Of a stretch of DNA of 64,000 nt, positions 25,541 through 60,910 are shown in pieces. How positions within the stretch are numbered: the first letter of the stretch is position 1; each line of letters starts with the position of its first letter. Source of the DNA: Anaeramoeba ignava BMAN (lineage: Eukaryota > Protista > Anaeramoebae); NCBI GenBank assembly GCA_028826165.1, contig JAPDFW010000099.1:1-64000 (forward strand), read 5' to 3'. The position numbers and the translations under genes were made by a program. The notes beneath the pieces are model-generated. The model was not told where the DNA came from and made no database searches. It saw only the letters and a list, made by a program, of their open reading frames with translations.

Positions 25541-28326
25541 ATGGATTTTAATGAACTTTATCGTTTATTAAGTTCTTTTACAAATTCTGTTGAAAATGAT
25601 TTTCCAGATTTTCAATATTGTAATGAGTTATTAACTCAATTAAAAGTAAGCAAAATTAAATATGAAATTATTTATAAAATTATTTATAAAATTATTTATA
25701 AAATTATTAATAAAATTATTTATAAAATTAAATATAAAATTAATTATAAAATTAATTATAAAATTATTTATAAAATTATTTATTAAATTATATATTAAAT
25801 TATATATTAAATTATTTATAAAATTATTTATAAAATTATTTATAAAATTATTTATAAAATTATTTATAAAATTAAATATAAAATTATTTATAAAATTATT
25901 TATAAAATTAAATATAAAATTAAATATAAAATTATTTATAAAATTAATTATAAAATTAAATATAAAATTATTTATAAAATTAAATATAAAATTATTTATA
26001 AAATTATTTATAAAATTATTTATTAAATTATTTATAAAATTAATTATAAAATTATTTATAAAATTAATTATAAAATTATTTTATAAAATTATTTATAAAA
26101 TTATTTATAAAATTATTTATAAAATTATTTATAAAATTATTTATAAAATTATTTTATAAAATTATTTATAAAATTATTTTATAAAATTATTTATAAAATT
26201 ATTTATAAAATTATTTATAAAATTATTTATAAAATTATTTATAAAATTATTTATAAAATTATTTATAAAATTAAATATAAAAATTAAATATAAAATTAAA
26301 TATAAAATTAAATATAAAATTATTTATAAAATTATTTATAAAATTATTTATAAAATTATTTATAAAATTATTTTATAAAATTAAATATAAAATTAATTAT
26401 AAAATTAATTATAAAATTATTAATAAAATTATTAATAAAAATTATTTATAAAATTATTTATAAAATTAAATATAAATTTATTTATTAAATTATTTATAAA
26501 ATTATTTATAAAATTAAATATAAAATTATTTATAAAATTATTTATAAAATTATTTATAAAATTAATTATAAAATTAATTATAAAATTAAATATAAAATTA
26601 TTTATAAAATTATTTATAAAATTATTTATAAAATTATTTATAAAATTAATTATAAAATTATTAATAAAATTATTAATAAAATTATTTATAAAATTATTTA
26701 TAAAATTAAATATAAATTTATTTTATTAAATTATTTATAAAATTATTTATAAAATTAAATATAAAATTATTTTATAAAATTATTTATAAAATTATTTATA
26801 AAATTATTTATAAAATTATTTATTAAATTATTTATAAAATTATTTTATAAAATTATTTATAAAATTATTTATAAAATTATTTATAAAATTATTTATAAAA
26901 TTAAATATAAAATTATTTATTAAATTAAATATAAAATTAAATATAAAATTAATTATAAAATTAAATATAAAATTAAATATAAAATTATTTATTAAATTAT
27001 TTATAAAAATTAAATATAAAATTATTTATAAAATTAAATATAAAATATAAAAATTATTTATAAAAATTATTTATAAGATTATTTATAAAATTAAATATAA
27101 AATTATTTATAAAATTATTTATTAAATTAAATATAAAAATTAAATATAAAAATTAAATATAAAATTATTTATAAAATTATTTATTAAATTAATTATAAAA
27201 CTATTTATAAAATTATTTATAAAATTAATTATAAAATTAAATATAAAATTAAATATAAAATTAATTATAAAATTATTTATAAAATTATATATAAAATTAT
27301 TTATAAAATTATTTATAAAATTAAATATAAAATTATTTATAAAATTATTTATAAAATTAATTATAAAATTATTTATAAAATTAAATATAAAATTAAATAT
27401 AAAATTATTTATAAAATTAAATATAAAATTAAATTAGATTCAACTTGCTGAGCAAAATATCCTATTTTCTTCAAAATTAGAAAAACAAAATATAGAAGGA
27501 TTAAAAATTGCAAGTTTGTTATTATTTTATTTTTTCAAAATTAAAATTAAAATTAAAATTAAAATTAAAATTTCTTTGATTTAAAAAAAAAAGGACAAAC
27601 ACTTGAATTTGCTGTTATTTTAAGTGTTAAAATGAAAGAGAATAAATCTTTTGAAAGACATATTTCACAACTTAAACCTTATTATTATGATTATGAGTAA
27701 GTTTTTAAATTTTAAATTTGTTTAAATTTTTAATTTGTTTAAATTTTTAATTTGTTTAATTTTTTAATTTGTTTAATTTGTTTAATTTGTTTAATTTGTT
27801 TAAATTTTTAAATAGAAACTTTTTAGAACCATCAGAATTGAAACTTAAAATTTTAGGAATATATTTACTCTTTTTATTATCACAAAATCGAATTGCAGAA
27901 TTTCATACAGAATTAGAATTAATAAAAATAGAAGAAAGAAAAAGCAAATTTATATCATTTCCAATGAGATTAGAAGAGTTTATTTTGGATGGAAATTATT
28001 TTAAAATTCGAGAAGCATTTTCTGAAAAACCATCAGAATTATTTGATTTTTTTCTTGAAGAATTAATTCTTTCACTTCGTTCGCAAATTGCTGAATGTGT
28101 TCAAGTTTCTTATCCCCATTTGAAAGTTAAAGATGCTTTTGAAATTTTAATGTTAAAAGATAAAAATGATTTAATTGAAATTGCTCAACAAAATGACTGG
28201 TTAATTTCTGAAGATGATACAATTCATTTTAAACTTGAAAATGATAATGAAAATGTTCAAATTCCTTCAGATCGTTTAATAAGAGAAATTATTACTTATG
28301 CAAAAGAAATGGAAAGAATAATTTAA
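25541..28326 (+). CDS. RPN12: 26S proteasome lid subunit Rpn12/PSMD8, 4 exons
   Basis: RQTLEFAVILSV..SFERHISQLKPYYYDY; GIYLLFLLSQNRIAEFHTELE; LEEFILDGNY; C-terminus YAKEMERII. Confidence 0.95.
25646..27437 (+). repeat. 1.8-kb intron made of the same 12-bp AAATTATTTATA repeat as 5269-9883
   Basis: GTAAG at 25646, TAG ending at 27437, phase-0 join LK|IQLAE. Confidence 0.88.
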
Positions 28327-31371: not shown

Positions 31372-32901
31372 TTAAATGAAATAAGTCTCAAGTTCATCAA
31401 CAACCCATTTATCAAAAGAACCAGCTAAATAACTTTGAGCTTCATTTGTTCCCTTTTTAATTCCTTTTGGAAGTGAATAACTATAACCAAAATTTGAATA
31501 ACCACCTTTTAAATGACATTTCAAATAAAAATCAAAATTCTTATCAACTCCTGCAAAACTTGGACCATAACCAATAAAATAATAAATTGAATTACGTTCT
31601 TTTCGAATTCGGAATTTTTCGGAACTTCGATCATTTTTATCATTTCTTAATGAAAAAATAAATGCTTTTGGATCTGAAATGTATCCTCTAATTGGATTTG
31701 TTCTTTTGATACTCCATTTTGATTCATTACTTGTAAATCCAATTGAAGTGAATCCTCCAAAAATATAATTTTCTTTTGTTTGGATAATAACTAATGTTTT
31801 TCCTTTATCATCACAAAATGAATGCCATGTTTTGCAATCAAATCCATCTTTTTTTGCTGAATATCCTTTTTTCATTTTGGAAAAAAAATCATCATCTTTT
31901 ATCCATTCTTTTAATTTCTTCATAAACCCCATTTCTTTAATAATTTCTGAATCTGAAAATGGTGGAAAATTCTTTTTGATTTCATTCTCAATTTGGGAAT
32001 ATTTTTCAAAAATTGGTTTCATTTTCTCAATTTCTAAATTTAGTTTTTCTTTCTCTTTTTCTTTTTCTTCCACTTCTTTTCCTTTTATTTCCAAAAGAGG
32101 TTGTTGAATATCAATTAAAAAAGATTTTGGAAGGAAAAAATCAAGTTTTTTTAATTTATCAAATTCTTGTTTTGAAATTGAATCTTTATCAAATAATGAA
32201 AAAAAAGAATGAGATAATCTTTTCTTCTGTTTTTCTTTCTTTCCTTTTAATCTTTGATTTCTTTTTTCAATCCAATTATTTAAAAATTGAAAAAAATCAA
32301 ATTGAAAAATTTCTTTTTTTTCTTGTTTAAATTGAATAAATTTGATAATTTCTTCTTTAGTTAAATTGAATAAATTTTCATTATTCTGAATTTGGGAAAA
32401 ATTTTGATTTATTAATTCAAAACATTTCATTTCAATTTCATTTAATTTTAAATCTCGATTTTGGAAAAAAAATTGGAAAAAATTTGAATAATTAATTGAA
32501 TTTGAAATTTTTTTTTGAATAATTTCTTTCAATAAATTTAATTTAAAATAAATTGAAATTTCCATTAATTGAATAAGATTTTCTTGATTCTCAAAAGAAA
32601 TATTTCCATAATAAATATAACTCAAAATTGATTCCATTTCTTTTTTATTAAATTGGTTTAAAAAAATTTTACCAATCTCATTTTTTTCTCTTAAAAACTT
32701 ATCAAAAAAAGGAGATCTTGAACATAAAATTGATTTATGAACTTTAAATTCAAAAGGATTTGATTTATTCTCAACAAAAATTGAAAAATCAGTAAATGAA
32801 TTTCCATTTAAAAGGTTTGAATAATCTTTAATTAAATTTTTTGTTACTTTTTTTTGTAAATTTTTCATTTCATTTTGATTTTGATTTTGGTTTGTATTCA
32901 T
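31372..32901 (-). CDS. BTB/POZ + coiled coil + TLDc protein (copy A)
   Basis: BTB FTDFSIFV..FKVHKSILCSRSPFF; TLDc YSAKKDGF..WH..CDDKGKTLVIIQTKENYIFGGFT..AFIFSL..YGPSF..SYLAG..VDELETY. Confidence 0.92.
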   Translation of the reverse strand: MNTNQNQNQNEMKNLQKKVTKNLIKDYSNLLNGNSFTDFSIFVENKSNPFEFKVHKSILCSRSPFFDKFLREKNEIGKIFLNQFNKKEMESILSYIYYGNISFENQENLIQLMEISIYFKLNLLKEIIQKKISNSINYSNFFQFFFQNRDLKLNEIEMKCFELINQNFSQIQNNENLFNLTKEEIIKFIQFKQEKKEIFQFDFFQFLNNWIEKRNQRLKGKKEKQKKRLSHSFFSLFDKDSISKQEFDKLKKLDFFLPKSFLIDIQQPLLEIKGKEVEEKEKEKEKLNLEIEKMKPIFEKYSQIENEIKKNFPPFSDSEIIKEMGFMKKLKEWIKDDDFFSKMKKGYSAKKDGFDCKTWHSFCDDKGKTLVIIQTKENYIFGGFTSIGFTSNESKWSIKRTNPIRGYISDPKAFIFSLRNDKNDRSSEKFRIRKERNSIYYFIGYGPSFAGVDKNFDFYLKCHLKGGYSNFGYSYSLPKGIKKGTNEAQSYLAGSFDKWVVDELETYFI

Positions 32902-33062
32902 TTTTGAAAAAGAAAAAAATGAAAAAAATGAAAAATGAAATTTTAATTTTAATTTTAATTTTAATTTTAATTTTAATTTTAATTTTAATTTTAATTTTAA
33001 TTTTGATTTTCATTTTCATTTTCATTTTAATTTTAATTTTAATTATAATTTAAATTTTAATT

Positions 33063-34839
33063 TTAATTTTGATTTTTAAATTTGTTAATTAATAAATCAA
33101 ATAAATTTGGATTTGTTTGATTTAATTGAAAATAATCAATTCCAATTTGAATTTCATTAATGATTTCTTGTGTAATTTGAATATCATTTTTAATTTGATT
33201 TGAATAAATCCAATATTCAAATATTTGAAATGATTTATTACTTAATTCACTATAATCTGTAACTTTATTAGAAGTATCATTTGTTACAGATAAAAACATT
33301 CCTCGATATAATTCACTTCTCATTATTAATATTAATTTTAGGAAATTTATATTGTTTTTCTTTTCTTTCAATTATAAAATCTTTTTCATTTTCATTTTCA
33401 TTTTCTTTTTCATTTAAATAAATTCTTTTCATTGTTTCTTCAATTTTTTCATTTAAATTTATAATTTCTTTAATTTCAGAATATAATTTTGGATTTATTT
33501 TGGAATTGTTTGAATAAATCATTTCAAATATTTGATTTGATTCTTTAATTGATTTTTTTGAAATTATCTCTTGAAGTTTTTCAATTTGATTTTGATTTAA
33601 TCTATATTTCAATATTAATTTATGAGCTTCAATTATTTCTCCATTTTTGGTTTTAAATGAAATATCACAAAATTCTTTTCTTTCAAATAATTTTATCAAA
33701 TCTTCTTCAAGATTGGAAAAAGAAGGAGGAGAATAATAAAGAAATGAATTCCAAATTCCACAAGAAATATGATAATTAGAAATATCTTCATTAAATATTA
33801 ATTTAGGAAGTTCAATTTGAATTGGAATATATTGATTTTTTGTATCTCCAGTTCCTAATTCACCATTAGAATTATCTCCAAATCCAATTAGTTTTGGATT
33901 GGAGGTTAAAATCAAGTTATGAGAGTTTCCAACAGAAAAATCAATAATATTATCATCATTTTCAAATAAAAATGATTTGATTTCAGTAAATTCATAAGTA
34001 TTTTCATTTTGGCCAAGTCCATTATATTGATAATTTCCGCATGAATAAAATTTTCTTTTTGGATTTTGATTTTCGTCTTCAATCAACATTATTGAATGAT
34101 AATAGCATGTTTGAATATCAATTATTTTGCCTTTTGGAATATTTTGGATTTTGGTTAATTTTTGGACATTTGCTTCTTCTTTTCTTGATTCTCCTAATCC
34201 AAGTTGACCAGATTGATTATTTCCACATGAAAATAATTCATGATTTGAATTTAAAAGAAAAACAAAATTTGAATTAATTCTTGAAAATATTTTAGAAACA
34301 TTTTTCATCATTAAAATTGGTTTTTCTGTTTCTTCAATTTGGAAATAATCAAAACCAAGTTGACCATATTCATTTGAACCAATTCCATAAGCATTTTGAT
34401 TTGAAGTTAATAAGTAAATTGAATAAGCACCACAAAAAATATCTTGAATTATTCTATCATTTGTATCTTCAATTAATGATGAAATATTGATAAATTCATT
34501 TGGATTTTTTGGATTAATGTATTCTCCTTTTGCAAATACATTTCCTTCTATTGTTAAAATAGCTTCATTTTGTGTACCAACAGTTACTTTTTGAATATTT
34601 TCTTCAATTTGGATTTTTTCAGGTTTTTGATTTGATTCATTTTCATTTAAGTATTCTATTGCTTTTCCATTTTTAAAAAGGAAAATTGTTGAAAAATAAC
34701 CTGATGAAATTTGTTTAATTTGTTTTTCATTTTCATTTTCATTTTCAAATTTAAATTGAATTGGTTTTATTATTTTTTCTGGTTCATTTTTGATAAGAAT
34801 TGGATATTTATTTAAACCAAAAAATAAACAATCATTCAT
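33063..34839 (-). CDS. RCC1-repeat beta-propeller + C-terminal BTB domains (copy 1; one frameshift near 33335)
   Basis: GxNxxGQLG RCC1 repeats; FCDISF..AHKLIL; ILIMRSELYRGMF. ORFs 33313-34839 and 33063-33371 join via an extra A. Confidence 0.88.
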
Positions 34840-34877
34840 TTTTGAAAAAGAAAAAAATGAAAAAATAAATTTTGGGA

Positions 34878-35617
34878 TTTTAATTTTGATTTTAATTTTA
34901 ATTTTAATTTTGATTTTAATTTTAATTTTAATTTTGATTTTGATTTTAATTTTAATTTTAATATTGATTTTAATTTTAATTTTAATTTTAATTTTGATTT
35001 TAATTTTAATTTTAATTTTGATTTTAATTTTAATTTTAATTTTAATATTAATTTTAATTTTGATTTTAATTTTAATTTTAATTTTAATTTTGATTTTAAT
35101 TTTGATTTTAATTTTAATTTTAATTTTAATTTTGATTTTAATTTTGATTTTGATTTTAATATTAATTTTAATTTTGATTTTAATTTTAATTTTAATTTTA
35201 ATTTTGATTTTGATTTTAATTTTAATTTTAATTTTAATTTTAATTTTAATTTTGATTTTGATTTTAATTTTGATTTTAATTTTAATTTTAATTTTAATTT
35301 TAATTTCAATTATAATTTTAATTTTGATTTTTGATTTTAATTTTAATTTTAATTTTAATTTTAATTTTAATTTTAATATTAATTTTAATTTTAATTCTAA
35401 ATTTAATTTTGATTTTGATTTTTAATTTTGATTTTAATTTTAATTTTAATTTTAATTTTAATTCTAAATTTAATTTTGATTTTGATTTTTATTTTGATTT
35501 TAATTTTAATTTTGATTTTGATTATTAAATTTAAATTTTAATTTTAATTTTGATTTTGATTATTAAATTTAAATTTTAATTTTAATTTTAATTTTAATTT
35601 TGATTTTAATTTTAATT
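34878..35617 (-). repeat. Intergenic (AAAATT/AAAATC)n array
   Basis: Visible hexamer array between RCC1-BTB copies. Confidence 0.92.
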
Positions 35618-37411
35618 TTAATTTTGATTATTAAATTTGTTAATTAATAAATCAAATAAATTTGGATTTGTTTGATTTAATTGAAAATAATCAATTCCAA
35701 TTTGAATTTCATCAATTATTTCTTGTGTAATTTGAATTTCATTTTTAATTTGATTTGAATAAATCCAATATTCAAATATTTGAAATGATTTATTACTTAA
35801 TTCACTATAATCTGTAACTTTATTTGATTTATCTTCAGTTACAGATAAAAACATTCCTCGATATAATTCACTTCTCATTATTAATATTAATTTTGGAAAT
35901 TTATATTGTTTTTCTTTTCTTTCAATTATAAAATCTTTTTCATTTTCATTTTCATTTTCTTTTTCATTTAAATAAATTCTTTTCATTGTTTCTTCAATTT
36001 TTTCATTTAAATTTATAATTTCTTTAATTTCAGAATATAATTTTGGATTTATTTTGGAATTGTTTGAATAAATCATTTCAAATATTTGATTTGATTCTTT
36101 AATTGATTTTTTTGAAATAATTTCTTGAAGTTTTTCAATTTGATTTTGATTTTGATTTTGATTTAATCTATATTTCAATATTAATTTATGAGCTTCAATT
36201 ATTTCTCCATTTTTGGTTTTAAATGAAATATTACAAAATTCTTTTCTTTCAAATAATTTTATCAAATCTTCTTCAAGATTGGAAAAAGAAGAAAGGAAAG
36301 GAGAATAATAAAGAAATGAATTTCGATATCCGCAAAGAACATGATAATTGAAAATTTCTTCATTAAATCTTAATTTAGGAAGTTCAATTTCAATTGGAAT
36401 ATATTGATTTTTTGTATCTTCAGTTCCTAATTGACCTGAATCATTTTCTCCAAACCCAATTAATTTTGAATTGGAAGTTAAAATCAAAGTATGCATAAAT
36501 CCAACAGAAAAATCAATAATATTATCATCATTTTCAAATAAAGATGATTTGATTTCAGTAAATTCATAAGTATTTTCATCTTCATCTTCGCCAAGTCCAT
36601 TATATAGATAATAACCACATGAATAAAGTTTTCTTTTTGGATTTTCATTTTCATCTTCAATCAACATTATTGAATGATTGTCTCCACATTGAATATCAAT
36701 TATTTTGCCTTTTGGAATATTTTGGATTTTGGTTAATTTATCAATTTTTGTTTCTTTTCTTGATTCTCCTAATCCAAGTTGACCAACTTGATTATAGCCG
36801 CATACAAATAATTCTTGATTTGAATTTAAAAGAAAAACATTATTTGAAGTATTTCCTGAAAATATTTTAGAAACATTTTTCATCATTAAAATTGGTTTTT
36901 CTGTTTTTTTCAGTGTTTCAAAATCAAAACCAAGTTGACCATATTCATTTAAACCAATTCCATAAGCATTTTGATTTGAAGTTAATAAATAAATTGAATA
37001 AGATCCAGAAACAATATCTTGAATTATTCTATCATTTGTATCTTCAATTAATGATGAAATATTGATAAATTCATTTGAATTATTTGGATTGATAATATTT
37101 CCTTTGGCAAATACATTTCCTTCTATTGTTAAAATAGCTTCATTTTGATAACCAACAGTTACTTTTTGAATATTTTCTTCAATTTGGATTTTTTCAGGAT
37201 TCTGATTTGAATATTCTATTGCTTTTCCATTTTTAAAAAGGAAAATTATTGAATAATCTCCTGTTGAAATTTGTTTAATTTGTTTTTCATTTTCATTTTC
37301 ATTTTCATTTTCATTTTCAAATTTAAATTGAATTGGTTTTGTTATTTCATATGGTTCATTTTTGAAAAGTTTTGGAAATGAATTGAAACCAAAAAATAAA
37401 CAATCATTCAT
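35618..37411 (-). CDS. RCC1-repeat + BTB protein (copy 2)
   Basis: Intact 597-aa ORF paralogous to copies 1 and 3. Confidence 0.92.
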   Translation of the reverse strand: MNDCLFFGFNSFPKLFKNEPYEITKPIQFKFENENENENENEKQIKQISTGDYSIIFLFKNGKAIEYSNQNPEKIQIEENIQKVTVGYQNEAILTIEGNVFAKGNIINPNNSNEFINISSLIEDTNDRIIQDIVSGSYSIYLLTSNQNAYGIGLNEYGQLGFDFETLKKTEKPILMMKNVSKIFSGNTSNNVFLLNSNQELFVCGYNQVGQLGLGESRKETKIDKLTKIQNIPKGKIIDIQCGDNHSIMLIEDENENPKRKLYSCGYYLYNGLGEDEDENTYEFTEIKSSLFENDDNIIDFSVGFMHTLILTSNSKLIGFGENDSGQLGTEDTKNQYIPIEIELPKLRFNEEIFNYHVLCGYRNSFLYYSPFLSSFSNLEEDLIKLFERKEFCNISFKTKNGEIIEAHKLILKYRLNQNQNQNQIEKLQEIISKKSIKESNQIFEMIYSNNSKINPKLYSEIKEIINLNEKIEETMKRIYLNEKENENENEKDFIIERKEKQYKFPKLILIMRSELYRGMFLSVTEDKSNKVTDYSELSNKSFQIFEYWIYSNQIKNEIQITQEIIDEIQIGIDYFQLNQTNPNLFDLLINKFNNQN

Positions 37412-37605
37412 TTTTGAAAAAGAAAAAAATGAAAAAAAGAATTTTGGAATTTTTAATTTTGATTTTAATTTTGGTTTTTAATTTTAATTTTGATTTTTAA
37501 TTTTAATTTTGATTTTAATTTTGATTTTCATTTTTATTTTAATTTGGATTTTAATTTTGATTTTAATTTTAATTTTAATTTTAATTTTGATTTTGATTTT
37601 CATTC

Positions 37606-39189
37606 TCATTTTTCATTTTGATTTTGATTTTCATTTTCATTTTCATTTTCATTTTCATTTTCATTTTCATTTTCATTTGGATTCAAAATTTGTGTAAATT
37701 TGTTTAAACCTCTTCTTTTTCTTCTTCTTATCCAAATAATTACGAAAATGATTCCACCAATCAAAACAACACCACCAACAGAAACACCAATAATCCAATA
37801 TTTTTCGGAAGTTTTTTTTGCTTGACTATTAGGATTATCAGGTTCAAAGATAATTTGGAAAGAATAAACTTTTCCTTGAAAAGGATTATCACCAACTTTT
37901 GAATCAGGAGATCCAACAAAAATAAAATCTTGATAAAGAGAAACTTGATAACCAAAAAGATCACCATCTTGTCCATCACTTGCAATTAAAATTTCCTTTT
38001 GATTCCAATTTGTTCCGTTATTCTCAAAAACATAAGCTTTTCCTTGAATTGAATCATTTATTCCAACTTTTGAATAAGGAGATCCAATCAAAAGAAAATT
38101 TCCATAAACAGAAACAGAAAAACCAAAATAATCACCATCTTGTCCATCACTTGCAATTAAAATTTCCTTTTGATTCCAATTTGTTCCGTTATTCTCAAAA
38201 ATATAAACTTTTCCTTGGTTTGAATTTGTTCCAATTTTTGCCATTGGAGATGAAATTATGAGAATTTTTCCCGAATTTGAAATACTGTATCCAAATTCAT
38301 CATTTTGTTGACCATCACTTGCAATTAAAATTTGCTTTTGATTCCAATTTGTTCCGTTATTCTCAAAAATATAAACTTTTCCTTGATTTGAATTTGTTCC
38401 AATTGTTGCCCCCGGAGATGAAATTAAAATGGATTGATCAACAATTACAATACTAGTTCCAAAATAATCATTTTGTTGACCATCACTTGCAATTAAAATT
38501 TGCTTTTGATTCCAATAACTTCCATCAAACTCAAAAATATAAACTTTTCCTTGATTTGAGTTTATTCCAACTGGTGCAACTGGAGCTCCAATTACTGTAA
38601 TATTCCCTGAAATTGCAACAACAAAACCAAGTAAATCTCCACTTTTTCCATCACTTGCAATTAAAATTTCCTTTTGATTCCAATTTGTTCCGTTATTCTC
38701 AAAAATATATGCTTCTCCTTGTCTTGAGTTTATTCCAACTTTTGAATAAGGAGATCCAATTATACAATAATTTCCAGAAAGAGCAACTTCAAAAGCAAAA
38801 ATATTATTTTCCACTCCATCATTTGCAATTAAAATTTGCTTTTGATTCCAATTTGTTCCGTTATTCTCAAAAATATATGCTTCTCCTTGTGATTCTCGAA
38901 TTCCAACGGTTGCGTTTGGTGATCCTATTATTGAATAATTACCTGAAATGAATAAACTTGATCCAAAATTTTGATATGAAATATTCTCTTTTGATGTTAT
39001 TGTTTCTTCATTTGTTATATTTGAACTTCTATATTCATTCTCATCTTCAATTTTAATTTCTTTTATTTTTTGCTTTTTTTCAAATCTTTCTTTAAATGAA
39101 TCATTTTTGGAATTTTTTTGTGTTTCACAATAAAAACAATTAAAAATAATTGAGAAAAGGAAATAAAATCCAATTATCTTTAAATTCAT
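37606..39189 (-). CDS. Type I membrane protein with 7 FG-GAP repeats and no stalk
   Basis: Signal peptide; ~56-aa repeats ILIASDGQxxDxFGxSVxxxGxxxxIGSP..QGKVYIFENNGTNWNQK; TM WIIGVSVGGVVLIGGIIFVIIWI followed by RRRKRR. Confidence 0.88.
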   Translation of the reverse strand: MNLKIIGFYFLFSIIFNCFYCETQKNSKNDSFKERFEKKQKIKEIKIEDENEYRSSNITNEETITSKENISYQNFGSSLFISGNYSIIGSPNATVGIRESQGEAYIFENNGTNWNQKQILIANDGVENNIFAFEVALSGNYCIIGSPYSKVGINSRQGEAYIFENNGTNWNQKEILIASDGKSGDLLGFVVAISGNITVIGAPVAPVGINSNQGKVYIFEFDGSYWNQKQILIASDGQQNDYFGTSIVIVDQSILISSPGATIGTNSNQGKVYIFENNGTNWNQKQILIASDGQQNDEFGYSISNSGKILIISSPMAKIGTNSNQGKVYIFENNGTNWNQKEILIASDGQDGDYFGFSVSVYGNFLLIGSPYSKVGINDSIQGKAYVFENNGTNWNQKEILIASDGQDGDLFGYQVSLYQDFIFVGSPDSKVGDNPFQGKVYSFQIIFEPDNPNSQAKKTSEKYWIIGVSVGGVVLIGGIIFVIIWIRRRKRRGLNKFTQILNPNENENENENENENENENQNQNEK

Positions 39190-39365
39190 TTTTTAAAAAC
39201 AAAAATTCAAAAACAAAAGAGGAAAAAAAAATGAATTTATATAAAAAAATTTTTTTTTTTTTTTGATCAAATTTTAATTTTTTGATCAACTTTTTTTTTA
39301 ATTCCTTTACAATTAATTTTCTTTACTCATCATTTAAAAAAAAAAATTATTTTAAATTAATAAGA

Positions 39366-39980
39366 AAAATTATTAAAAAAAATTCAATAAAATTAATAAA
39401 ATATTTTAATTAATTTATTTTCATTTTTATATCAAGAATATTAAATAATTTCATTTAAAATTAATTCTATTTTATATATTTTATCAACTTTTATTTATTT
39501 CAATTAATATAAAATTATTAAATAAAATTAAATAAAATTAATAAAATATTTTAATTAATTTATTTTCATTTTTAAATCAAGAATATTAAATAATTTCATT
39601 TAAAATTAATTTTATTTTATGTATTTTATCAACTTTTCTTTATTTCAATTAATATAAAATTATTAAAAATAATTCAATAAAATTAATAAAATATTTTAAT
39701 TAATTTATTTTCATTTTTGAATCAAGAATATTAAATAATTTCATTTAAAATTAATTCTATTTTATATATTTTATCAACTTTTATTTATTTCAATTAATAT
39801 AAAATTATTAAAAAAAATTCAATAAAATTAATAAAATATTTTAATTAATTTATTTTCATTTTTAAATCAATATTATTAAATAATTTAATTTAAAATTAAT
39901 TCTATTTTATATTTTATCAACTTTTATTTATTTCAATTAATATAAAATTATTAAAAAAAATTAAATAAAATTAATAAAAT
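39366..39980. repeat. ~145-bp tandem repeat, 4 full copies plus a partial one
   Basis: Unit starts (AAAATTATTA..TCAAGAATATTAAATAATTTCATT..TATCAACTTTT) at 39366, 39511, 39656, 39801 and 39944. Confidence 0.9.
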
Positions 39981-40299
39981 TATGGAATATTTTCATAAAG
40001 ATAAAAATTGAATTTTGATAACATTTTATAATAAATTCTAAAGGATTTTTTTATTAATTTATCTAGTAATAAAGAATTTAAATTTAATTATTAATTTCTT
40101 TTTTCAATTTTTATTTTTGTTTATCATCTTAAAAACAATTTTTTTTACTTCTCTTTCTAAATTTTTTATCATTATTTATAATTATTTTGGAATTGTTTAA
40201 AATTGGATTTGTTTCTTATTTATTGATTTGAAGAATTAAATTTGATTAAAAGTAAAAGAAAATTGAATTGAATTTTGAAAAAAAAAATAGAAAAAGATT

Positions 40300-41922
40300 T
40301 TAAATGAAATAAGTCTCAAGTTCATCAACAACCCATTTATCAAAAGAACCAGCTAAATAACTTTTTGCCTCATTTGTATTATAAGTAATTCCATTAGGAG
40401 AATTATAAGTATGCCCGATATTTGAATAACCAGGTTGTAAGTTTGATCCTAAAAAAAAATCTGTGCTATTTGATGGACCATATCCACCACCTCCAAAACC
40501 TGGACCAAATCTCGAATAGCTATGCTCAATTGCTTTTCCTTCCATCCCTTGTTTAATTGTAAATTTTTCTGGTTTTCTATCTCCTTTATCATTTCTTAAT
40601 GAAAAAATAAATGCATTTCCATCTCGAAGAAAAGAATCACTTCCTTTTCTCCATCCAATTGAAGTAAATCCTCCAAAAATATAATTTTCTTTTGTTTGGA
40701 TAATAACTAATGTTTTTCCTTTATTATCAACTGCTTCATGCCATTTTTTGCAATCAAATCCATCTTTTTTTGCTGAATATCCTTTTTTCATTTTGGAAAA
40801 AAAATCATTATTATTTATCCATTCTTGTAATTTCTTAACATATTCAATATCTTGAACAATTTCTGAATCTGAAAATTGAGGAAAATTCTTATCGAAATCT
40901 TTCATTTGTTTTTCATATTCCAAATCTTTTTGGTATTGATCTCCATATTTATCAAAAATAGGTTTCATTTCCTCAACTTCTTTTTTCCATTTCTCTTCAA
41001 TTTCAATTTTCATTTGTTGATTTTCTTTCTTCCATTTCTCTTCAATTTCCTTTTTCATTTGTTGATTTTCCTTCTCTTTGTTTTCAATTTCTTTTTGATT
41101 TTCTTGAATAACTTTGTTTTGAATATCAATTAAAAAAGAATTTGGAAGAAAAAAATCAAATTGTTTTAATTTATCAAAATCTTGTTTTGAAATTGAATCT
41201 TTATCAAATAATGAAAAAAAAGAATGAAATAATCTTTTCTTTGCATTTATTTTGTGCTTATATTTCTTTCCTTTTAATCTTTCATTTCTTTTTTCAATCC
41301 AATTATTTAAAAATTGAAAAAAATCAAATTGAAAAATTTCTTTTTTTTCTTGTTTAAATTGAATAAATTTGATAATTTCTTCTTTAGTTAAATTGAATAA
41401 ATTCTCATTATTCTGAATTTGGAAAAAATTTTGATTTATTAATTCAAAACATTTTATTTCAATTTCATTTAATTTTAAATTTCGATTTTGGAAAAAAAAT
41501 TGGAAAAAATTTGAATAATTAATTGAATTTGAAATTTTTTTTTGAATAATTTCTTTCAATAAATTTAATTTAAAATAAATTGAAATTTCTAATAATTGAA
41601 TAAGATTTTCTTGATTCTCAAAAGAAATATTTCCATAATAAATATAACTCAAAATTGATTCCATTTCTTTTTTATTAAATTGATTTAAAGAAATAGAAAG
41701 AGATTCTTGCCTTAATGACTCATTAAAAAAAGGAGATCTTGAACATAAAATTGATTTATGAACTTTAAATTCAAAAGGATTTGATTTATTCTCAACAAAA
41801 ATTGAAAAATCTTTAAATGAATTTCCATTTAAAAGGTTTGAATAATCTTTAATTAAATTTTTTGTTACTTTTTTTTGTAAATTTTTCATTTCATTTTGAT
41901 TTTGATTTTGGTTTGTATTCAT
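40300..41922 (-). CDS. BTB/POZ + coiled coil + TLDc protein (copy B)
   Basis: 540-aa ORF; N-terminal half nearly identical to copy A. Confidence 0.92.
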   Translation of the reverse strand: MNTNQNQNQNEMKNLQKKVTKNLIKDYSNLLNGNSFKDFSIFVENKSNPFEFKVHKSILCSRSPFFNESLRQESLSISLNQFNKKEMESILSYIYYGNISFENQENLIQLLEISIYFKLNLLKEIIQKKISNSINYSNFFQFFFQNRNLKLNEIEIKCFELINQNFFQIQNNENLFNLTKEEIIKFIQFKQEKKEIFQFDFFQFLNNWIEKRNERLKGKKYKHKINAKKRLFHSFFSLFDKDSISKQDFDKLKQFDFFLPNSFLIDIQNKVIQENQKEIENKEKENQQMKKEIEEKWKKENQQMKIEIEEKWKKEVEEMKPIFDKYGDQYQKDLEYEKQMKDFDKNFPQFSDSEIVQDIEYVKKLQEWINNNDFFSKMKKGYSAKKDGFDCKKWHEAVDNKGKTLVIIQTKENYIFGGFTSIGWRKGSDSFLRDGNAFIFSLRNDKGDRKPEKFTIKQGMEGKAIEHSYSRFGPGFGGGGYGPSNSTDFFLGSNLQPGYSNIGHTYNSPNGITYNTNEAKSYLAGSFDKWVVDELETYFI

Positions 41923-42061
41923 TTTTGAAAAAGAAAAAAAATGAAAAAAATGAAAAAATGAAATTTTAATTTTAATTTTAATTTTAATTTAAATTTTAAT
42001 TTTAATTTAAATTTTGATTTTAATTTTATTTTTGATTTTAATTTTAATTTTAATTTTAATT

Positions 42062-43834
42062 TTAATTTTGATTATTAAATTTGTTAATTAATAAATCAAA
42101 TAAATTTGGATTTGTTTGATTTAATTGAAAATAATCAATTCCAATTTGAATTTCATCAATTATTTCTTGTGTAATTTCAATTTCATCTTTAATTTGGTTT
42201 GAATAAATCCAATATTCAAATATTTGAAATGATTTATTACTCAATTCACTATAATCTGTAACTTTATTAGAAGTATCATTTGTTACAGATAAAAACATTC
42301 CTCGATATAATTCACTTCTCATTATTAATATTAATTTGGGAAATTTATATTGTTTTTCTTTTCTTTCAATTATAAAATCTTTTTCATTTTCATTTAAATA
42401 AATTCTTTTCATTGTTTCTTCAATTTTTTCATTTGAATTTATAATTTCTTTAATTTCAGAATATAATATTGGATTTATTATTCTGTTTGAATAAATCATT
42501 TCAAATACTTGATTTGATTCTTTAATTGATTTTTTTGAAATAATTTCTTGAAGTTTTTCAATTTGATTTTGATTTTGATTTAATCTATATTTCAATATTA
42601 ATTTATGAGCTTCAATTATTTCTCCATTTTCTGTTTTAAATGAAATATCACAAAATTCTTTTCTTCTAAATAATTTTATCAAATCTTCTTCAAGATTGGA
42701 AAAAGAAGAAAGGAAAGGAGAATAATAAATAAATGAATTTCGATATCCGCAAAGAGTATGATAATTGAAAATTTCTTCATTAAATCTTAATTTAGGAAGT
42801 TCAATTTCAATTATATTTCCTTCTTTTTTAGTATTTCCAGTTCCTAATTGACCAAATAAATCACTTCCAAATCCTATTAGTTTTGAATTAGATGTTAAAA
42901 TCAAGTTATGAGCATCTCCAACAGAAAAATCAATAATATTATCATTTTCAAATAAAGATGATTTAATTTCAGTAAATTCATAAGTATTTCCATCTTCTTT
43001 GTCAAGTCCATTAAATAAATAATTTCCACATGAATAAAGTTTTCTTTTTGGATTTTGATTTTGGTCTTCAATCAACATTATTGAATTTGTCCAACCACAT
43101 TGAATATCAATTATTTTACCTTTTGGAATATTTTGGATTTTGGTTAATTTATCGATTTTTGTTTCTTCTTCTTTTGTTGATTCTCCTAATCCAAGTTGAC
43201 CAAAAAGATTTTCACCACATACAAATAATTCATGATTTGAATTCAAAAGAAAAACATGAAATGAAGAATTTCCTGAAAATATTTTAGAAACATTTTTCAT
43301 CATTAAAATTGGTTTTTCTGTTGTAAAAATTATTTCACAATCGAAACCAAGTTGGCCAGATAAATTAGAGCCAATTCCATAAGCATTTTGATTTGAAGTT
43401 AATAAGTAAATTGAATATTTTCCAGAAACAATATCTTCAATTATTCTATCATTTTTATCTTCAATTAATGATGAAATATTGATAAATTCATTTGGATTTT
43501 CTGGATTAATATTTTCTCCTTTAGCAAATACATTTCCTTCTATTGTTAAAATAGCTTCATTTTTATAACCAACAGTTACTTTTTGAATATTTTCAATTTC
43601 AATTTCTTGAGGATTTTGATTTGAATCATTTTTATTTAAGTATTCTATTGCTTTTCCATTTTTAAAAAGGAAAATTGTTGAATAATTTCCTGATGAAATT
43701 TGTTTAATTTGTTTTTCGTTTTCATTTTCATTTTCATTTTCAAATTTAAATTGAATTGGTTTTTTTATTCTTTTTGGTTCATTTTTGATAAGTTTTGGTT
43801 CTTCATTTTTACCAAAAAATAAAATTTCATTCAT
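42062..43834 (-). CDS. RCC1-repeat + BTB protein (copy 3)
   Basis: Likely start MNEILFFG at 43834 by alignment with the paralogs; the track's upstream extension is repeat-derived. Confidence 0.9.
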   Translation of the reverse strand: MNEILFFGKNEEPKLIKNEPKRIKKPIQFKFENENENENEKQIKQISSGNYSTIFLFKNGKAIEYLNKNDSNQNPQEIEIENIQKVTVGYKNEAILTIEGNVFAKGENINPENPNEFINISSLIEDKNDRIIEDIVSGKYSIYLLTSNQNAYGIGSNLSGQLGFDCEIIFTTEKPILMMKNVSKIFSGNSSFHVFLLNSNHELFVCGENLFGQLGLGESTKEEETKIDKLTKIQNIPKGKIIDIQCGWTNSIMLIEDQNQNPKRKLYSCGNYLFNGLDKEDGNTYEFTEIKSSLFENDNIIDFSVGDAHNLILTSNSKLIGFGSDLFGQLGTGNTKKEGNIIEIELPKLRFNEEIFNYHTLCGYRNSFIYYSPFLSSFSNLEEDLIKLFRRKEFCDISFKTENGEIIEAHKLILKYRLNQNQNQIEKLQEIISKKSIKESNQVFEMIYSNRIINPILYSEIKEIINSNEKIEETMKRIYLNENEKDFIIERKEKQYKFPKLILIMRSELYRGMFLSVTNDTSNKVTDYSELSNKSFQIFEYWIYSNQIKDEIEITQEIIDEIQIGIDYFQLNQTNPNLFDLLINKFNNQN

Positions 43835-43944
43835 TTTTGAAAAGAAAAAAATGAAAAATGATTTTTTAATTTTAATTTTAATTTTGAATTTTAATTTTAA
43901 TTTTAATTTTAATTTTAATTTTAATTTTAATTTTAATTTTAATT

Positions 43945-46900
43945 TTAATTTTGATTTGAATTTTGGTTCATTCGACTTGAACAAACAAAACACCAAAATT
44001 TAGAATTATTTTGATTATTATCTGGAGATTTCTTTTGGATAATTTGACGATTATCAACATCATCAGTTTTGATATTTAAAGTATCACTTAAACAAGATTT
44101 ATGATAAGCATGACCACAATTAAAAACAATAGAATTTTGATGAGGTTGATTAAGTATTGATTCTCCGCATAAATAGCAATGTTGAGAAGAAGTGACTCTT
44201 CTTCCTCTTCTTGATTGCTTATAGAAAACAAACATCAAATCAGTGCAATCCTTCTCAATAATATCTTTTGTAACTTCTCTAAGTTGAACTTGCAATTTAA
44301 AATCATCCAAAATTGCTGTCAATTTATTTTGCAAATGAGGTATTTGCATTTTTGGTGGGATTCTTCTTACAACTTGCAATATATCAAACTTGGTACTTAA
44401 TGTGTGATCCAATAAATCTGAAAGATAATTGGGATTTGTTAAGCAATACTTGATTAAATCGTTCCATAAATCTTTATCTCCTTCTTCTTGAACAAATTCA
44501 ATTGCTTGTTTTATATCCTTTAATTCCTTTATAATAATATCAAGTGTTTGTTTTGCATTTCCCATTCTTTTCATGATGAACACCATTTCCCGAATAAGAT
44601 GGTTTTCTCGACAAACCTCAAGTGCTTTTTCCAATGGGATGCTTGTGCTTGATTTGAGGAAATTCATCATTTTTTCTGGTGCAAATTGGACATATAAATT
44701 TAATTGCAATCCGTGATATTTTCTTGAAATAAGTGGATCTTCTTCAAAAATACCATCCAAATATAAATGCAATAATTTTGCGTCGTGTTTTAATTGAGGC
44801 ACAATTTTATCAATAGGAAGTCTATCGTTATTTTTCACCAACAAATCGATTGTTTCTTCAACTGAGAATTCGATTAATTGTTGGACTTTATCCACAATTG
44901 AATCAAACAAATTGTGTTCATTAATCAATCCAAAAACATCTCCTTTCTTAATTTTCAAAAAGATATCTAGTGCTTGTTCGTGTTTATCGGTTTTACTGTA
45001 TAAATTTGCCAATGTTATTAAGTAATTCTCTTGATTTTCTTTTGTTTCTTGTTTGTGTATGTTTTCCTGAATGAATTGTATTAAAACCTGAGTGTCATAT
45101 AAATTAATTGGCCAATCCTCAATCAATTCATTCATTTTTTCAATATCTTTTTGGAGATAATAATTCAAAATTGATTGATAAGTTTTTGGATCCAATTTTG
45201 GTGTTTTGATTGGGATTTTGCTAATAATATCATCAAGTTTATCATTTTCAATAAATTTTTGAATCCATTTAGCCCATAAACCTTCTTCTTTTTCACAAAC
45301 CCAAGAACAATCATTAATTGCTTCTGAAAAAAGTTGGTTTTGGAATAAATGATTAAGATGTTTTTCTCCCAAATCTTGATAAGTATATGCTTTAAGCTCT
45401 TTTGGGTTTTCTTTTGCCAAAGTTATTGCTGATTTAAATTTGGAAACTTTTACAAGCCAAGAAATTTTATTATCGACTGAAAGTTTTTGAGCAGATAAAA
45501 CTTGTTGAGAAGAAGAAAAAAAGAGTTTTTTTTCATTTTCATTATTTTCTAAGTGGTATTCTAAAGGATTTGGTTTTGAACGAAGACGGATTTGGCATTT
45601 TTCAGTTGCAATTTCATTTCCTTCCAAATTGATGAGTCTAATAATTAATCCTTCATTTGATTTAATTTGTTTTTTTTCATCAATAATTTTTTTTTCATCA
45701 ATAATTTCTTTTTCTTCATTATTAATATTTTCATTATTATTATTTTCATTATTAATATTCTCATTATTAGTATTCTCTTGTGTTTTTTGTGGAGGTTCAA
45801 TATCAGTTTCAGTTTCGGTTTGTGTTAAATTATCAGTTTCTGTTTCTGATCTTAAATTTGATTGATTTTCACTTTTTGATTTTTTCAATTTTTTTTGAGT
45901 AGTTTTTGTTCCATCCAATTCAAGTAATAATTCATCATCTTCCATTGTAAGTAATAATAAATTTGAATCAAAAAAGGAAATTCCACAAATAAAGAAATCA
46001 AATATTTGATAATAAATTGCACTCATTTTGGAAGGAGTGTTTTCATTTTTATATAAATCTTTTTTTAGTTCACAAATTGATAAAAAATTTCCCCAAGCAA
46101 TAGCAAGTTTAGAACCTTTCCATTTAAAAAAGCAACGGAATCCATCAGGTCTTGGAGAATTTAAAGGTCTCAATATATTCTATAAAATATATATATTTTT
46201 CAATTCAATTTAAATTTCAATTCAATTTAAATTTCCATTTTTATTTACATGAATAATTTTTGAATTAATAATATCATAAACATAAATTCCATTATTATTT
46301 GACCAAGTAACATATTGATTTGTCCAATTAATAGAATAAATTGTTCCTTCATTACTATGAATTAATAAATCATTTGTTTTAAAAAATCCTAAAAAAAAAA
46401 ATTTTTAATAAAATAATAAAATTATAAAAAATTAAATTAAATTAAATTAAATTAAATTAAATACCTTTACTACGAAGAACAATATTTCCTGAAACTCCTC
46501 CATAAATAAATGATTGTGATTTTTTTACTCCATATTCTGGATCAATTGCTATTGATTTAATAACTTGTGGGAAAGTATATTGTTGTGATTTATCAGTATT
46601 TATTCCATTTATAACAACATTTCCTATTTTTAATTTTTAATTTTTAATTTTTAATTTTTAATTTTTAATTTTTAATTTTTAATTTTTAATTTTTAATTTT
46701 TAAATAAAATTCACCATCAACAGAACAACTTCCAATATAATCTCCTTTAAAATCAAAACTAATATCATTTACAGAAGCTTCATAAGATTTAAATTCTTTA
46801 ATTTTATTTCCCAAAAAATCAAATATATAAATATAACCATCATATGTTCCAATTGCCTTAACAAAATTAAAATTAATTAAAATTAGAATTATAATTAAAA

Positions 46901-58067: not shown

Positions 58068-60876
58068 TCAATTTTTATCTTCTTTTTCTTTTTCATTTTC
58101 TTTTTCATTTTGATTTTCTTTTTCATTTTCATTTGATTTTATATCTGTAACTTTGTTCTTTAATCTTTCTTCCATATTTTCAATAAATTTAGGATTTGAA
58201 CCTTTTTCTTTACTTCCAAAAAGAGCCCAATCAGGTGTTTTCATCATATAATCTTCTCTTGTAAAAGGTTTTTTTTCTTGAAATAATTGCTATAAAATAA
58301 AAGAAGAAAATGTTTTTCAAAATTTTAATTTTCAATTATTATTTTGATTTAAATTTATATTTACAAAAAATTTATCAAAATCTATCCAAGTGTGCCAACT
58401 ATTATTTTTGTAAAAAATTTTCTTTGCAATTAAAATTCCACAACTATGAGCATGTTCACATGCAATTCCATAATTTTCTTTCATATAATCATTTTCCATA
58501 AATTCTTGAGCCATTTTGACAATTTCTTGATGATAAGGAACATTCTAAATTATTTAATAATAATAATATTATTATTTTTATTTCATGTTTTTGTTAATTT
58601 TAATTATCAAAATTACATTCATTGAAACTTTTGGATTTGTTCCAAATCCACCATAAGTAACACCTTTTAATTCAACAAAATCTGGTTTTCCCAATTTAAT
58701 CAAATCAACATAATTTTGGATAAAGTTATCATTATATTGTTTTAAAACTGTAATTCGGAAAACTGTTCTTTCATTTCTTTTTGCTAAATTTTCAATTGAT
58801 TTAAGAAATCTTTCCCAAAAATCAGGAAATAAAGGACGATCCAATTCAAATAAAATATCTTTTGTTGGAGCATCAATACTCAAATATAATTGAGTAACTG
58901 GTTTAATTGATTCAATTTTTTCAGGAAATTGTGCATTTGTCACACAAAATGTTGAGATTCTATTTTCATGGAGAATATCAGTAAATTCATCAAATTGAGG
59001 ATAAATAATTGGTTCTCCAACAAGTGATAAAGCACAATGACGAACCTGATTTAATATTATGGAAATTTAATAATTTAGTGTCATGTTAGTGTTAATAAAT
59101 TTTATATTTTATATTTTCAAATTTACATTAAAAGCATCTTTATATCTATCTGAAGTTACACCAGGAACTCCTTTCCAAGGTTTTATCAAATCTTTTTGAG
59201 CTTTGATTGATCCTTGATAAATCATTTCAGGAGGATCTTGCTAATAAATATTTTTTTTAAATTTCATGTTTTTAAATATTTTTTTGAATTTTTTTTTTAA
59301 ATTTCATGTTTTTAACAAACTTTATAATGCCAAGAAGTGCAAGTTGGATTTTTGTTGTGTCTCCAACAGAAAATACATTTATTAGCACAAGCAAGTGAAG
59401 TTGTCATTTCCATACAAGAATATGAAATAATACCATAAAAGGCATGTTTATAGCAAACACCTTTTCCTCTTAGCATAGCCTTAGCCCATCGGCATAATTT
59501 TACAGCAGAATGAGTTCCTACTGTGATATACTTTTGTTTTGTCAAAATTTTATTCATAATTGGTGTTAACATTTCAACATCTTCAATATCAGTCGTTTGA
59601 TTTTCATCATTTTCATCATTTTCGAAATTATCATCTTCATCTTCATCTTCATTATCAATATCAATATCAATATCTTTATCATTTTCTTTATCGTTATGCA
59701 AAATGACATTTTCATTCAATTTTTCATTTGGTTTTAATATTGCTTTCAATTTTTCAACTAAAATATCAGTAAATCTATTAAAATGCAGAAGAAGTTCTTC
59801 AAATTTATTTCCATGATTTCCTAATCCTTTCTTTAAGATTGAGTTTCCTCCTTTTTTTCTTAAGTAAACATCAACATCTCTTGCAAATTTATTGTATTTT
59901 TCATTATAACTAAGATCACCAATTCCATAAATCCAATATCGTAATTTTGATAAATAATTTTGTGGGATTCTTTGGTCATTAACAAGATCTGTTAAAAAAT
60001 GTGAGAAAGTTTTTGCTGAGCGTGGTGGTCCTCCTTAATTATTTTTAATTTAAATTTAAAATATTTATTTAATTATTGATTTAATTATTTTGTATTTAAT
60101 TATTTTGAATTTAATTATTTATTTAATTATTTATTTAATTATTTTGGATTTAATTATTTTGGATTTAATTATTTATTTAATTATTTATTTAATTATTTAT
60201 TTAATTATTTTGGATTTAATTATTTATTTATTTATTTTGGATTTAATTATTTTGGATTTAATTATTTTGGATTTAATTATTTATTTAATTATTTTGGATT
60301 TAATTATTTATTTATTTATTTATTTAATTATTTATTTAATTATTGATTTAATTATTTATTTAATTATTTTGGATTTAATTATTTATTTAATTAATTGATT
60401 TAATTATTTTGGATTTAATTATTTGATTTAATTATTGATTTAATTATTTGATTTAATTATTTATTTAATTATTTTGATTTAATTATTTTGGATTTTAATT
60501 ATTTTGATTTAATTATTTTGGATTTAATTATTTATTTAATTATTTTGGATTTAATTATTTTGGATTTAATTATTTATTTAATTATTTATTTAATTAATTA
60601 TTTAATTATTTTGGATTTAATTATTGATTTATTTAATTATTATTTTGATTTATTAATTATTTAATTATTTAATTATTTTGGATTTAATTATTTTGGATTT
60701 AATTATTTTTGGATTTAATTATTTATTTAATTATTTATTTAATTATTTATTTAATTATTTTGGATTTAATTATTTTTATTTAATTTATTTATTTAATTAT
60801 TTAATTTTTATTTAATTATTGATTTAATTATTTATTTAATTATTTATTTAATTATTTATTTAATTATTATTGATTT

Positions 60877-60910
<34 letters not shown>

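Follow-up and report, generated by a model that had tools for sequence, protein, structure and literature searches.

The window analysed here, a stretch of 64,000 nucleotides (nt) from contig JAPDFW010000099.1 of the anaerobic protist Anaeramoeba ignava BMAN, contains three closely related genes of the RCC1-BTB-BTB type, in which hypervariable (HV) positions are set on a nearly constant scaffold. All three lie on the minus strand. Copy A (33063-34839), delimited from the list of open reading frames (ORFs) and the alignment, is split into two ORFs by a 1-nt insertion. Copy B (35618-37411) is an intact gene of 597 amino acids (aa), whose ORF matches Pfam RCC1, RCC1_2, WD40_RLD and BTB, and copy C (42062-43834), recognized from its ORF, the alignment and Pfam, is likewise intact with 590 aa counted from its ATG (43834). 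In each of the copies Pfam detects RCC1 repeats along with two BTB stretches. For the RCC1-like domain (RLD) propeller, RCC1 and RCC1_2 score 84 and 81 bits, both over the cut-off, and WD40_RLD scores 142 bits, slightly below its cut-off of 150; BTB scores 39-42 bits in two stretches in copies B and C, against a cut-off of 20.5.

Residue numbering throughout is that of copy B, in which residue r occupies window positions 37411-3r+1 to 37411-3r+3. The seven-bladed RCC1-like propeller spans residues 1-372 (36296-37411, minus strand) and holds all 38 HV codons. It is followed on the same strand by a partial first BTB domain at residues 378-485 (35957-36280), assigned from the first Pfam BTB stretch and the secondary structure of the model, and by a complete second BTB domain at residues 494-596 (35624-35932), which corresponds to the second Pfam stretch and aligns to the BTB domain of KBTBD4. 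The extra base of copy A falls at the codons for Pro506 and Lys507 (~33336-33341), where the polymorphic Pro506 codon CCT is followed by AAAA, and the remaining 102 codons downstream of the frameshift are open. Because the rest of the frame is intact, copy A is either a very recent pseudogene or the product of an assembly or long-read error at the homopolymer.

A first-pass annotation of this DNA, made from the letters alone, had listed triplets of loop motifs by which the three copies differ, and had proposed that they differ mainly at loop positions. All of the motif triplets are recovered in the alignment of copies A, B and C. Among the 479 comparable columns 103 vary, and the family-wide HV positions are strongly over-represented among them, since 36 of the 37 that can be compared vary among the three copies while 8 are expected (hypergeometric p=1e-25). 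The entropy analysis that the annotation had called for was carried out on 70 distinct full-length paralog coding sequences aligned over 597 columns, and it gave a sharply bimodal division into conserved and hypervariable columns. Column entropy has a median of 0.11 bit and stays below 0.3 bit in 391 of the 597 columns. At the other extreme, 38 columns have more than 2 bits, 26 of these more than 2.5 bits, and each of the 38 is occupied by 9-17 residue types. All 38 HV columns are located in the propeller half, at residues 9, 11, 12, 21, 22, 52, 88, 89, 105, 110, 137, 138, 156, 157, 168, 188, 190, 206, 208, 209, 221, 222, 224, 244, 245, 267, 269, 276-278, 305, 306, 322, 324, 335, 337, 362 and 363. 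A set of 68 further annotated paralogs reproduces the profile (r=0.97), and 36 of the 38 HV positions recur in it.

The AlphaFold2 model of copy B, whose input alignment took in paralogs at 33-59% identity, has a mean predicted local distance difference test (pLDDT) score of 87 and displays a pattern of seven times four strands. The top Foldseek matches are RCC1, RPGR, the RLDs of HERC1/2, and UVR8, with target template modelling (TM) scores of 0.7-0.8 and E-values of 1e-18 to 1e-24, and the N-terminal half is accordingly predicted to adopt the seven-bladed beta-propeller fold of RLDs. In the model each blade runs from strand b1, which ends in a conserved Gly, through b2 and b3, which also ends in Gly, to a long loop and b4. 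HV residues occupy the two places after the b1 Gly in the G-x-x-H hairpin (52; 88/89; 137/138; 188/190; 244/245; 305/306; 362/363), stand just after b3 (105; 156/157; 206/208/209; 267/269; 322/324; 9/11/12), or stand just before b4 (110; 168; 221/222/224; 276-278; 335/337; 21/22). In all seven blades the HV sites are thus restricted to the hairpin between b1 and b2 and to the two ends of the loop between b3 and b4, and none of the 38 sites is found in a b2-b3 loop or in a b4-b1' loop. The b1-b2 and b3-b4 connections of a four-stranded antiparallel blade share a face, so that all HV sites would lie on one face of the propeller. The proposal that the variable positions are surface loops of the propeller is in keeping with the model, in which the sites, rather than being scattered over the structure, fall in loops of the same parity only.

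The position of this face can be related to proteins of known structure. In a HMMER alignment to UVR8, HV residues 244/245 and 305/306 stand opposite the W-R of GWRHT motifs, and HV residues 267/269 stand opposite W94/D96; according to the literature on UVR8, these residues make up its dimer-contact face. In RCC1 the literature places the binding of Ran on the equivalent face, and the counterpart of the Ran-binding face is the hypervariable one.

There is good support for diversifying selection on one face of the propeller. From pooled pairwise counts the framework has a synonymous divergence (dS) of 0.090 and a nonsynonymous divergence (dN) of 0.029, and the HV codons have a dN of 0.81 and a dS of 0.34. 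The HV dN is therefore ~9 times the framework dS, and the dS inside HV codons is itself ~3.7 times that of the framework. The pairwise dN/dS ratio (omega) by the method of Nei and Gojobori (NG86) is 2.2-2.4 at HV sites. A held-out design guarded against circularity: the HV codons were set on 35 sequences and a Goldman-Yang (GY) codon model was fitted to the other 35, which yielded omega values of 2.71 for HV, 1.60 for intermediate and 0.26 for framework codons, with a tree 22 times as long at HV codons as at framework codons. Fixing omega at 1 for the HV codons worsened the fit by 2dlnL=26.8 in a likelihood-ratio test. In 35 disjoint pairs, 59 codons change amino acid beyond the framework synonymous rate (Bonferroni 0.01), 52 of them in the propeller, and seven codons are still significant when the high proportion of synonymous differences (pS) local to HV codons is taken as the neutral rate. 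The BTB half hardly varies at all (dN 0.033), yet seven of its codons, 388, 394, 451, 452, 526, 567 and 570, exceed the neutral expectation. The framework and the BTB tail, with omega 0.26-0.38, are under purifying selection, and most copies therefore appear to be maintained as working genes.

The HV residues also have a composition of their own. Tyr makes up 17.8% of them against 2.9% in the framework, and Asp, Arg, His and Trp are enriched as well, while Ile (2%), Leu, Gly, Pro and Met are depleted. As many as 63% of the HV codons are of the NAN type, and the composition is far from the expectation of drift driven by A+T content. The first-pass annotation had described the loops as antibody-like and the genes as a diversifying repertoire on a constant scaffold, open to a site-wise dN/dS check. 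The held-out omega lies above 1 at the HV sites, rather than at or below it; the composition resembles that of a paratope, and nearly every copy has a unique combination of HV residues; the entropy profile, its replication and the selection tests together bear out a diversifying repertoire. Targeted mutagenesis in the manner of diversity-generating retroelements (DGRs) was considered and rejected. The second position of HV codons is A in 63% of cases and yet is less variable than the first (heterozygosity 0.47 versus 0.58), the copies are germline paralogs, and no reverse transcriptase was seen among the ORFs of the window.

The HV haplotype is unique in 69 of the 70 paralogs, and the pairwise HV identity of 21.5% equals the value expected if the sites varied independently. 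The HV combinations are thus effectively random, so that almost every copy presents a different surface. Framework identity between copies ranges from 94.2 to 99.7% (median 96.1%), HV identity is at its baseline once the framework difference reaches ~2.3%, and the nucleotide tree is star-like, with internal branches contributing 10.8% of its length. Linkage between variable sites (r2 0.15-0.19) is confined to distances of 1-5 nt, beyond which it falls to the no-linkage baseline, and all four gametes are present in ~88% of site pairs. There are 27 synonymous variants of intermediate frequency in mutual equilibrium, including A/T variants near 50:50, for which recurrent mutation is not an easy explanation. 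At the conserved Gly, the choice of silent third base goes with the adjacent HV codon (GGA-AGA, for example, in 13 of 13 carriers); paralogs that share such a micro-haplotype show no increased similarity elsewhere, not even at a distance of 2-4 codons. A star-like burst followed by point mutation only would account for the C-to-T/A synonymous variants through a GC-to-AT mutation bias; it is ruled out by the A/T synonymous variants, whose ~50:50 frequencies in full linkage equilibrium it leaves unexplained. Read most simply, the paralogs form a well-mixed pool in which very short tracts are exchanged and diversifying selection preserves old HV alleles. Some of the sharing of HV alleles might be due to parallel mutation.

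Protein searches identify the source organism as A. ignava. A search of the genome for the family returned 2,855 first-look candidates, and all 73 of the 73 that were scored are full-length, with 84-88% identity. Allowing two mismatches, a conserved 24-mer of the second BTB domain (BTB2) has 1,355 matches in the genome and a propeller 24-mer has 1,155, while the reversed-pattern controls have 0. The family thus comprises about 1,155-1,355 copies per A. ignava genome. At ~1.8 kb per gene this amounts to roughly 5-6% of the 42.8-Mb assembly, and to about 8-9% of a gene set of ~14,900, a total derived from the statement in the genome paper that 612 laterally transferred genes represent 4.1% of genes (PMC11550330). 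On many contigs the copies form tandem arrays, in which they share a strand and are spaced at ~2 kb. An internal stop is absent in 64 of the 73 scored copies; the other 9 (~12%) carry one, copy A being additional to these, and this pseudogene share comes from a sample biased towards intact copies. Many members are found no more than a few kb from the end of a contig (among them C4:403, C5:3272, C9:524, C10:552, C108:1228 and C37:3194, and likewise C131:139789 of 143637), and either the arrays are subtelomeric or they break the assembly.

Among the relatives examined the family appears to be confined to A. ignava. Within the top 150 representatives, A. ignava is the source of all relatives that share the architecture, to an identity as low as 33%, and some of them have armadillo-type extensions at the N-terminus. 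Outside A. ignava the nearest relative is a protein of 1,590 aa from A. flamelloides at 32% identity, and the remaining protein-search matches are bacterial multi-RCC1 proteins. A viral or environmental origin was discarded, as the IMG/VR viral contigs contained no relatives and metagenome contigs of the Joint Genome Institute (JGI) gave one RCC1 protein of 24% identity. Contig pieces of 50-163 nt from a hydrothermal-vent metagenome match the RCC1-BTB genes at 33000-38000 of the window with 0-1 mismatches, and this near-identity points to the presence of A. ignava, or of a very close relative, in that habitat. A description of such a family was not found in the literature searched. The words RCC1, BTB, ubiquitin and cullin are all absent from the main text of the genome paper, the supplement of which gives PANTHER names only where it tabulates candidates for lateral transfer (the counts are mainly for A. 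flamelloides), and locus tags of family members were not found in the supplementary files examined (PMC11550330).

The tail was also modelled separately. The model of residues 373-597 (35621-36295) has a pLDDT of 89, and the best structural matches of the whole tail are engineered single-chain POZ dimers, Miz1-BCL6 and Miz1-Nac1. As these are tethered pairs of BTB domains, the first BTB domain (BTB1) and BTB2 are predicted to pack as an intramolecular pseudo-dimer. On its own, BTB2 matches SPOP in its complex with Cul3 (4eoz_A, target TM-score 0.73), KBTBD2/4 and BCL6, with root-mean-square deviations of 2.4-2.6; the fold belongs to the long, dimer-type class on which CUL3 adaptors rely. The A. 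ignava genome has approximately eight cullin loci, on contigs C64, C71, C74, C109, C57 and C58, with a tandem pair on C57. By best match at least four are Cul4-like, one is CUL2/CUL1-like and one is Cul3-like. The Cul3-like call is best-match evidence from the largest exon only of the multi-exon gene on C58, for which the best solved-structure match is CUL3 at 401 bits, against 343 bits for CUL4B. The cullin set of A. ignava is itself expanded.

Several known systems share features with the family. Human RCBTB1/RCBTB2 and IBTK have the same arrangement of an RLD propeller followed by two BTB domains, and the names that sources give to the A. ignava proteins are 'BTK-binding protein-related' or 'RCC1 and BTB domain-containing'. 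The likeness is one of architecture rather than of established orthology, all relatives above 33% identity being A. ignava paralogs. The animal RCBTB genes are single-copy and conserved, in contrast to the ~1,200 copies with a hypervariable propeller face in A. ignava. Arabidopsis UVR8 and the RLDs of human RCC1 and HERC2 have the seven-bladed fold in common with the family; unlike it, they present one fixed surface per partner and have no BTB tail.

Expanded and positively selected families of Cullin-RING adaptors, of the MATH-BTB and F-box types, were reportedly described by Thomas in 2006 (Genome Res). Such families are known from nematodes and plants (PMC8120010, PMC4091423). Like the A. 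ignava family, they are lineage-specific expansions with selection focused in the substrate-binding domain, and they combine that domain with a conserved cullin- or Skp1-binding module, comparable to the constant BTB tail; a role in defence has been proposed for them. They differ in their recognition domain, which is MATH, FTH or FBA rather than an RCC1 propeller. The A. ignava family has hundreds more copies, ~96% nucleotide identity in the framework, and discrete positions resembling complementarity-determining regions (CDRs), and its cullin link, unlike that of the MATH-BTB and F-box adaptors, comes from homology. The WD40 propellers encoded by hnwd, het-e and het-d of Podospora anserina, which act in allorecognition, have a conserved framework with hypervariable face positions and undergo concerted evolution (PMC2873952, PMC4986451, PMC11761791). 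Features common to them and the A. ignava propellers are the small number of HV positions that each blade has on the interaction face, the action of positive selection, and exchange between repeats and paralogs. The fungal diversity lies between repeats and alleles of a handful of loci, whereas in A. ignava it lies between ~1,200 whole-gene paralogs; the fold is WD40 instead of RCC1, and the effector part is a NACHT and a death domain instead of BTB-BTB. Conceptually, the family is nearest to the MATH-BTB and F-box adaptors and to the WD40 propellers of fungal NOD-like receptors (NLRs), while its scaffold, scale and uniformity are new.

The explanation that we favour, with moderate confidence, is that the whole family constitutes a hypervariable repertoire of cytosolic receptors, in which a constant BTB-BTB tail leads to a common effector, likely a Cul3-like cullin. 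The scaffold and the BTB tail are kept near-identical by purifying selection, probably aided by exchange between copies, and the variable face of 38-59 codons would bind diverse, fast-changing protein ligands. Through the tail all receptors would be coupled to the same effector; analogy with RCBTB1, SPOP and KLHL proteins makes the Cul3-like cullin of the genome the most likely candidate, and the bound targets would be ubiquitinated. The putative role as Cullin-3 adaptor is plausible on grounds of homology, its basis being the RCBTB-like architecture and the presence of a Cul3-like gene; human RCBTB1, with an RLD and two BTB domains, is itself a putative CUL3 adaptor (PMC4974088). The RCC1-BTB proteins have no signal peptide, their N-terminus being a propeller strand, and would therefore meet cytosolic targets rather than symbionts facing the extracellular space; the genome paper places the symbionts in a symbiosomal membrane network (PMC11550330). 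Scale and pattern would fit the recognition of non-self proteins in the cytosol, whether viral, bacterial-effector or mobile-element, better than housekeeping regulation, and an immune or symbiont-control role is put forward here as a hypothesis.

A number of observations weigh against this explanation. Conserved codons that lie no more than three codons from an HV site have a 3-4 fold higher synonymous diversity (p=0.003, stratified by amino acid), so that part of the excess change may be mutational or due to hitch-hiking, and recombination among copies can inflate tree-based selection tests. The one-face arrangement rests on strand topology and homology, not on measured distances. With regard to the effector, neither a 3-box nor a BACK domain follows BTB2, as the protein ends one residue past helix A5 and Pfam finds no BACK. 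Where the phi-x-E motif would be expected, copy B has V-T-E and copies A and C have V-T-N; the KBTBD4 alignment sets V524-T525-E526 one residue off the L-K-E motif, and position 526 varies across the family. BTB domains also serve purposes unrelated to cullins. Core members were not among the transcriptome-derived proteins examined, the family-related fragment proteins examined are genome models, not transcripts, and the sequencing runs covered consist of fragmented contigs of 65-100 nt.

A bolder form of the favoured explanation, which we offer tentatively and regard as possible rather than probable, is an anticipatory cell-autonomous system, in which ~1,200 germline-encoded cytosolic receptors on an RCC1 propeller would all be wired, by way of the single constant BTB-BTB module, to a Cul3-type ligase that destroys foreign protein. 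Their ~40 contact positions would be reshuffled continually between copies through exchange of very short tracts, and selection would keep them diverse. If true, this would be a ubiquitin-ligase-based protist counterpart of the antibody or variable lymphocyte receptor (VLR) repertoire.

Of the other explanations, the one that survives best, and that we nevertheless consider unlikely, is that a local mutational process, such as very short-tract gene conversion or error-prone repair at the loops, is the main source of the variation rather than selection for diversity. In favour of such a process are the raised synonymous diversity within three codons of HV sites, the ~3.7-fold dS of the HV codons themselves, the linkage confined to 1-5 nt, and the tie between the silent base of the conserved Gly and the next HV codon in carriers that are otherwise no more alike. 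Against it, omega is 2.7 relative to the local dS in the held-out data, the seven codons remain significant even against the local HV pS, and residue use (Ile 2%, Tyr 18%) is far from the A+T-driven expectation. A mutational process of this kind is also compatible with the receptor repertoire, for which it would generate the variation on which selection acts.

Somewhat less probable again is that the variable faces match endogenous partners, either expanded small GTPases, for which the RCC1-like domain would serve as exchange factor or scaffold, or the co-located BTB-TLDc proteins paired with them. RCC1-like domains bind GTPases on the equivalent face, with RCC1-Ran and RPGR among the structural neighbours, and the genome paper reports large Rab and TBC expansions (PMC11550330). 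BTB-TLDc genes, with a constant BTB half and a variable TLDc half, lie directly downstream of RCC1-BTB arrays at many loci; yet they are far fewer than the RCC1-BTB genes in those arrays. Typical members of the RCC1-BTB family have no attached GTPase domain, and ~1,200 random, unlinked surfaces with saturated change at a dS of 0.09 are hard to reconcile with co-evolving pairs.

Discrimination between amoebae as self and non-self (allorecognition, mating or kin recognition), like that of the fungal het/NLR propellers and in place of pathogen defence, seems quite improbable to us. It draws on the closest evolutionary analogue, hnwd/het-e of Podospora, acting in allorecognition (PMC2873952, PMC4986451), but such systems usually consist of few highly polymorphic loci and not of ~1,200 paralogs per genome, and no cell-death or signalling domain is attached to the A. 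ignava propellers. Neutral drift of relaxed loops after a recent duplication burst, or its variant of a selfish cassette that spreads via (AATTTT)n arrays with no host function, is already disfavoured and the least probable of all: the star-like tree with 10.8% internal branch length, the narrow range of framework identity (94-98%), the hexamer arrays able to drive unequal exchange around every cassette, the stop codons in ~12% of scored copies and the frameshift of copy A agree with it, but neutral loops cannot outpace the synonymous rate (omega 2.7, HV dN ~9 times framework dS), the HV composition is off mutational equilibrium, purifying selection acts on framework and BTB tail alike (omega 0.26-0.38), and neither transposase, integrase nor terminal repeats were seen in the cassette flanks.

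If the receptors are expressed and work as proposed, ~8-9% of the genes of a free-living anaerobic protist would serve one recognition repertoire. It would be the largest and cleanest system of hypervariable loops on a constant scaffold outside the known immune receptors, and the first on an RCC1 propeller. Immunity in a deep-branching eukaryote, that is, the discrimination of intracellular bacteria, viruses and mobile elements by a single cell, would become testable in a lineage that lives by managing prokaryotic partners, and the question of how germline repertoires stay diverse over a uniform framework would be opened. The scaffold is in addition a natural library for the engineering of binding proteins.

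The cassettes are bracketed by (AATTTT)n arrays, located with Tandem Repeats Finder (TRF). One array of 23 copies lies at the 3' end of copy A (32939-33076), and one of 126 copies fills the spacer between copies A and B (34877-35638). Further arrays are found upstream of copy B (37451-37678), at the 3' end of copy C (41962-42082) and upstream of copy C (43864-43964). A consensus of 29 loci has hexamer arrays on both flanks and a conserved stretch of ~35 nt just before the ATG. This bracketing is limited to the RCC1-BTB cassettes, and the other genes of the window are without such arrays, which could drive unequal exchange and change in copy number.

BTB-TLDc genes, identified by Pfam BTB and TLD, lie on the minus strand directly downstream of copy A (31372-32901) and of copy C (40300-41922), the latter being a possible cassette partner. 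They represent a second large A. ignava family, with 1,277 first-look candidates and at least 80 loci, in which the BTB half is conserved at 85-91% and the TLDc half at only 60-73%. By comparison of coordinates, an RCC1-BTB gene or array followed by a same-strand BTB-TLDc gene occurs twice in the window and at 10 or more other places. Between copy B and the second cassette lies a gene for an FG-GAP membrane protein (37606-39189, minus strand), which has seven near-identical repeat units of 168 nt and a C-terminal transmembrane segment, and a second FG-GAP-repeat protein is encoded at 2128-4770. Immediately upstream of copy C is the gene for Vps41, a subunit of the HOPS complex (43945-46173); expansions of HOPS subunits are noted in the A. 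ignava genome paper (PMC11550330).

An intergenic tandem repeat of 145 nt is present at 39366-39980 in 4.3 copies with 95% identity. Almost pure A+T stretches occur at 6001-10000 (GC 0.3-1.8%), 26001-28000 (GC 5%) and 60001-62000 (GC 7.6%), the last of which has a GC skew of +0.92.

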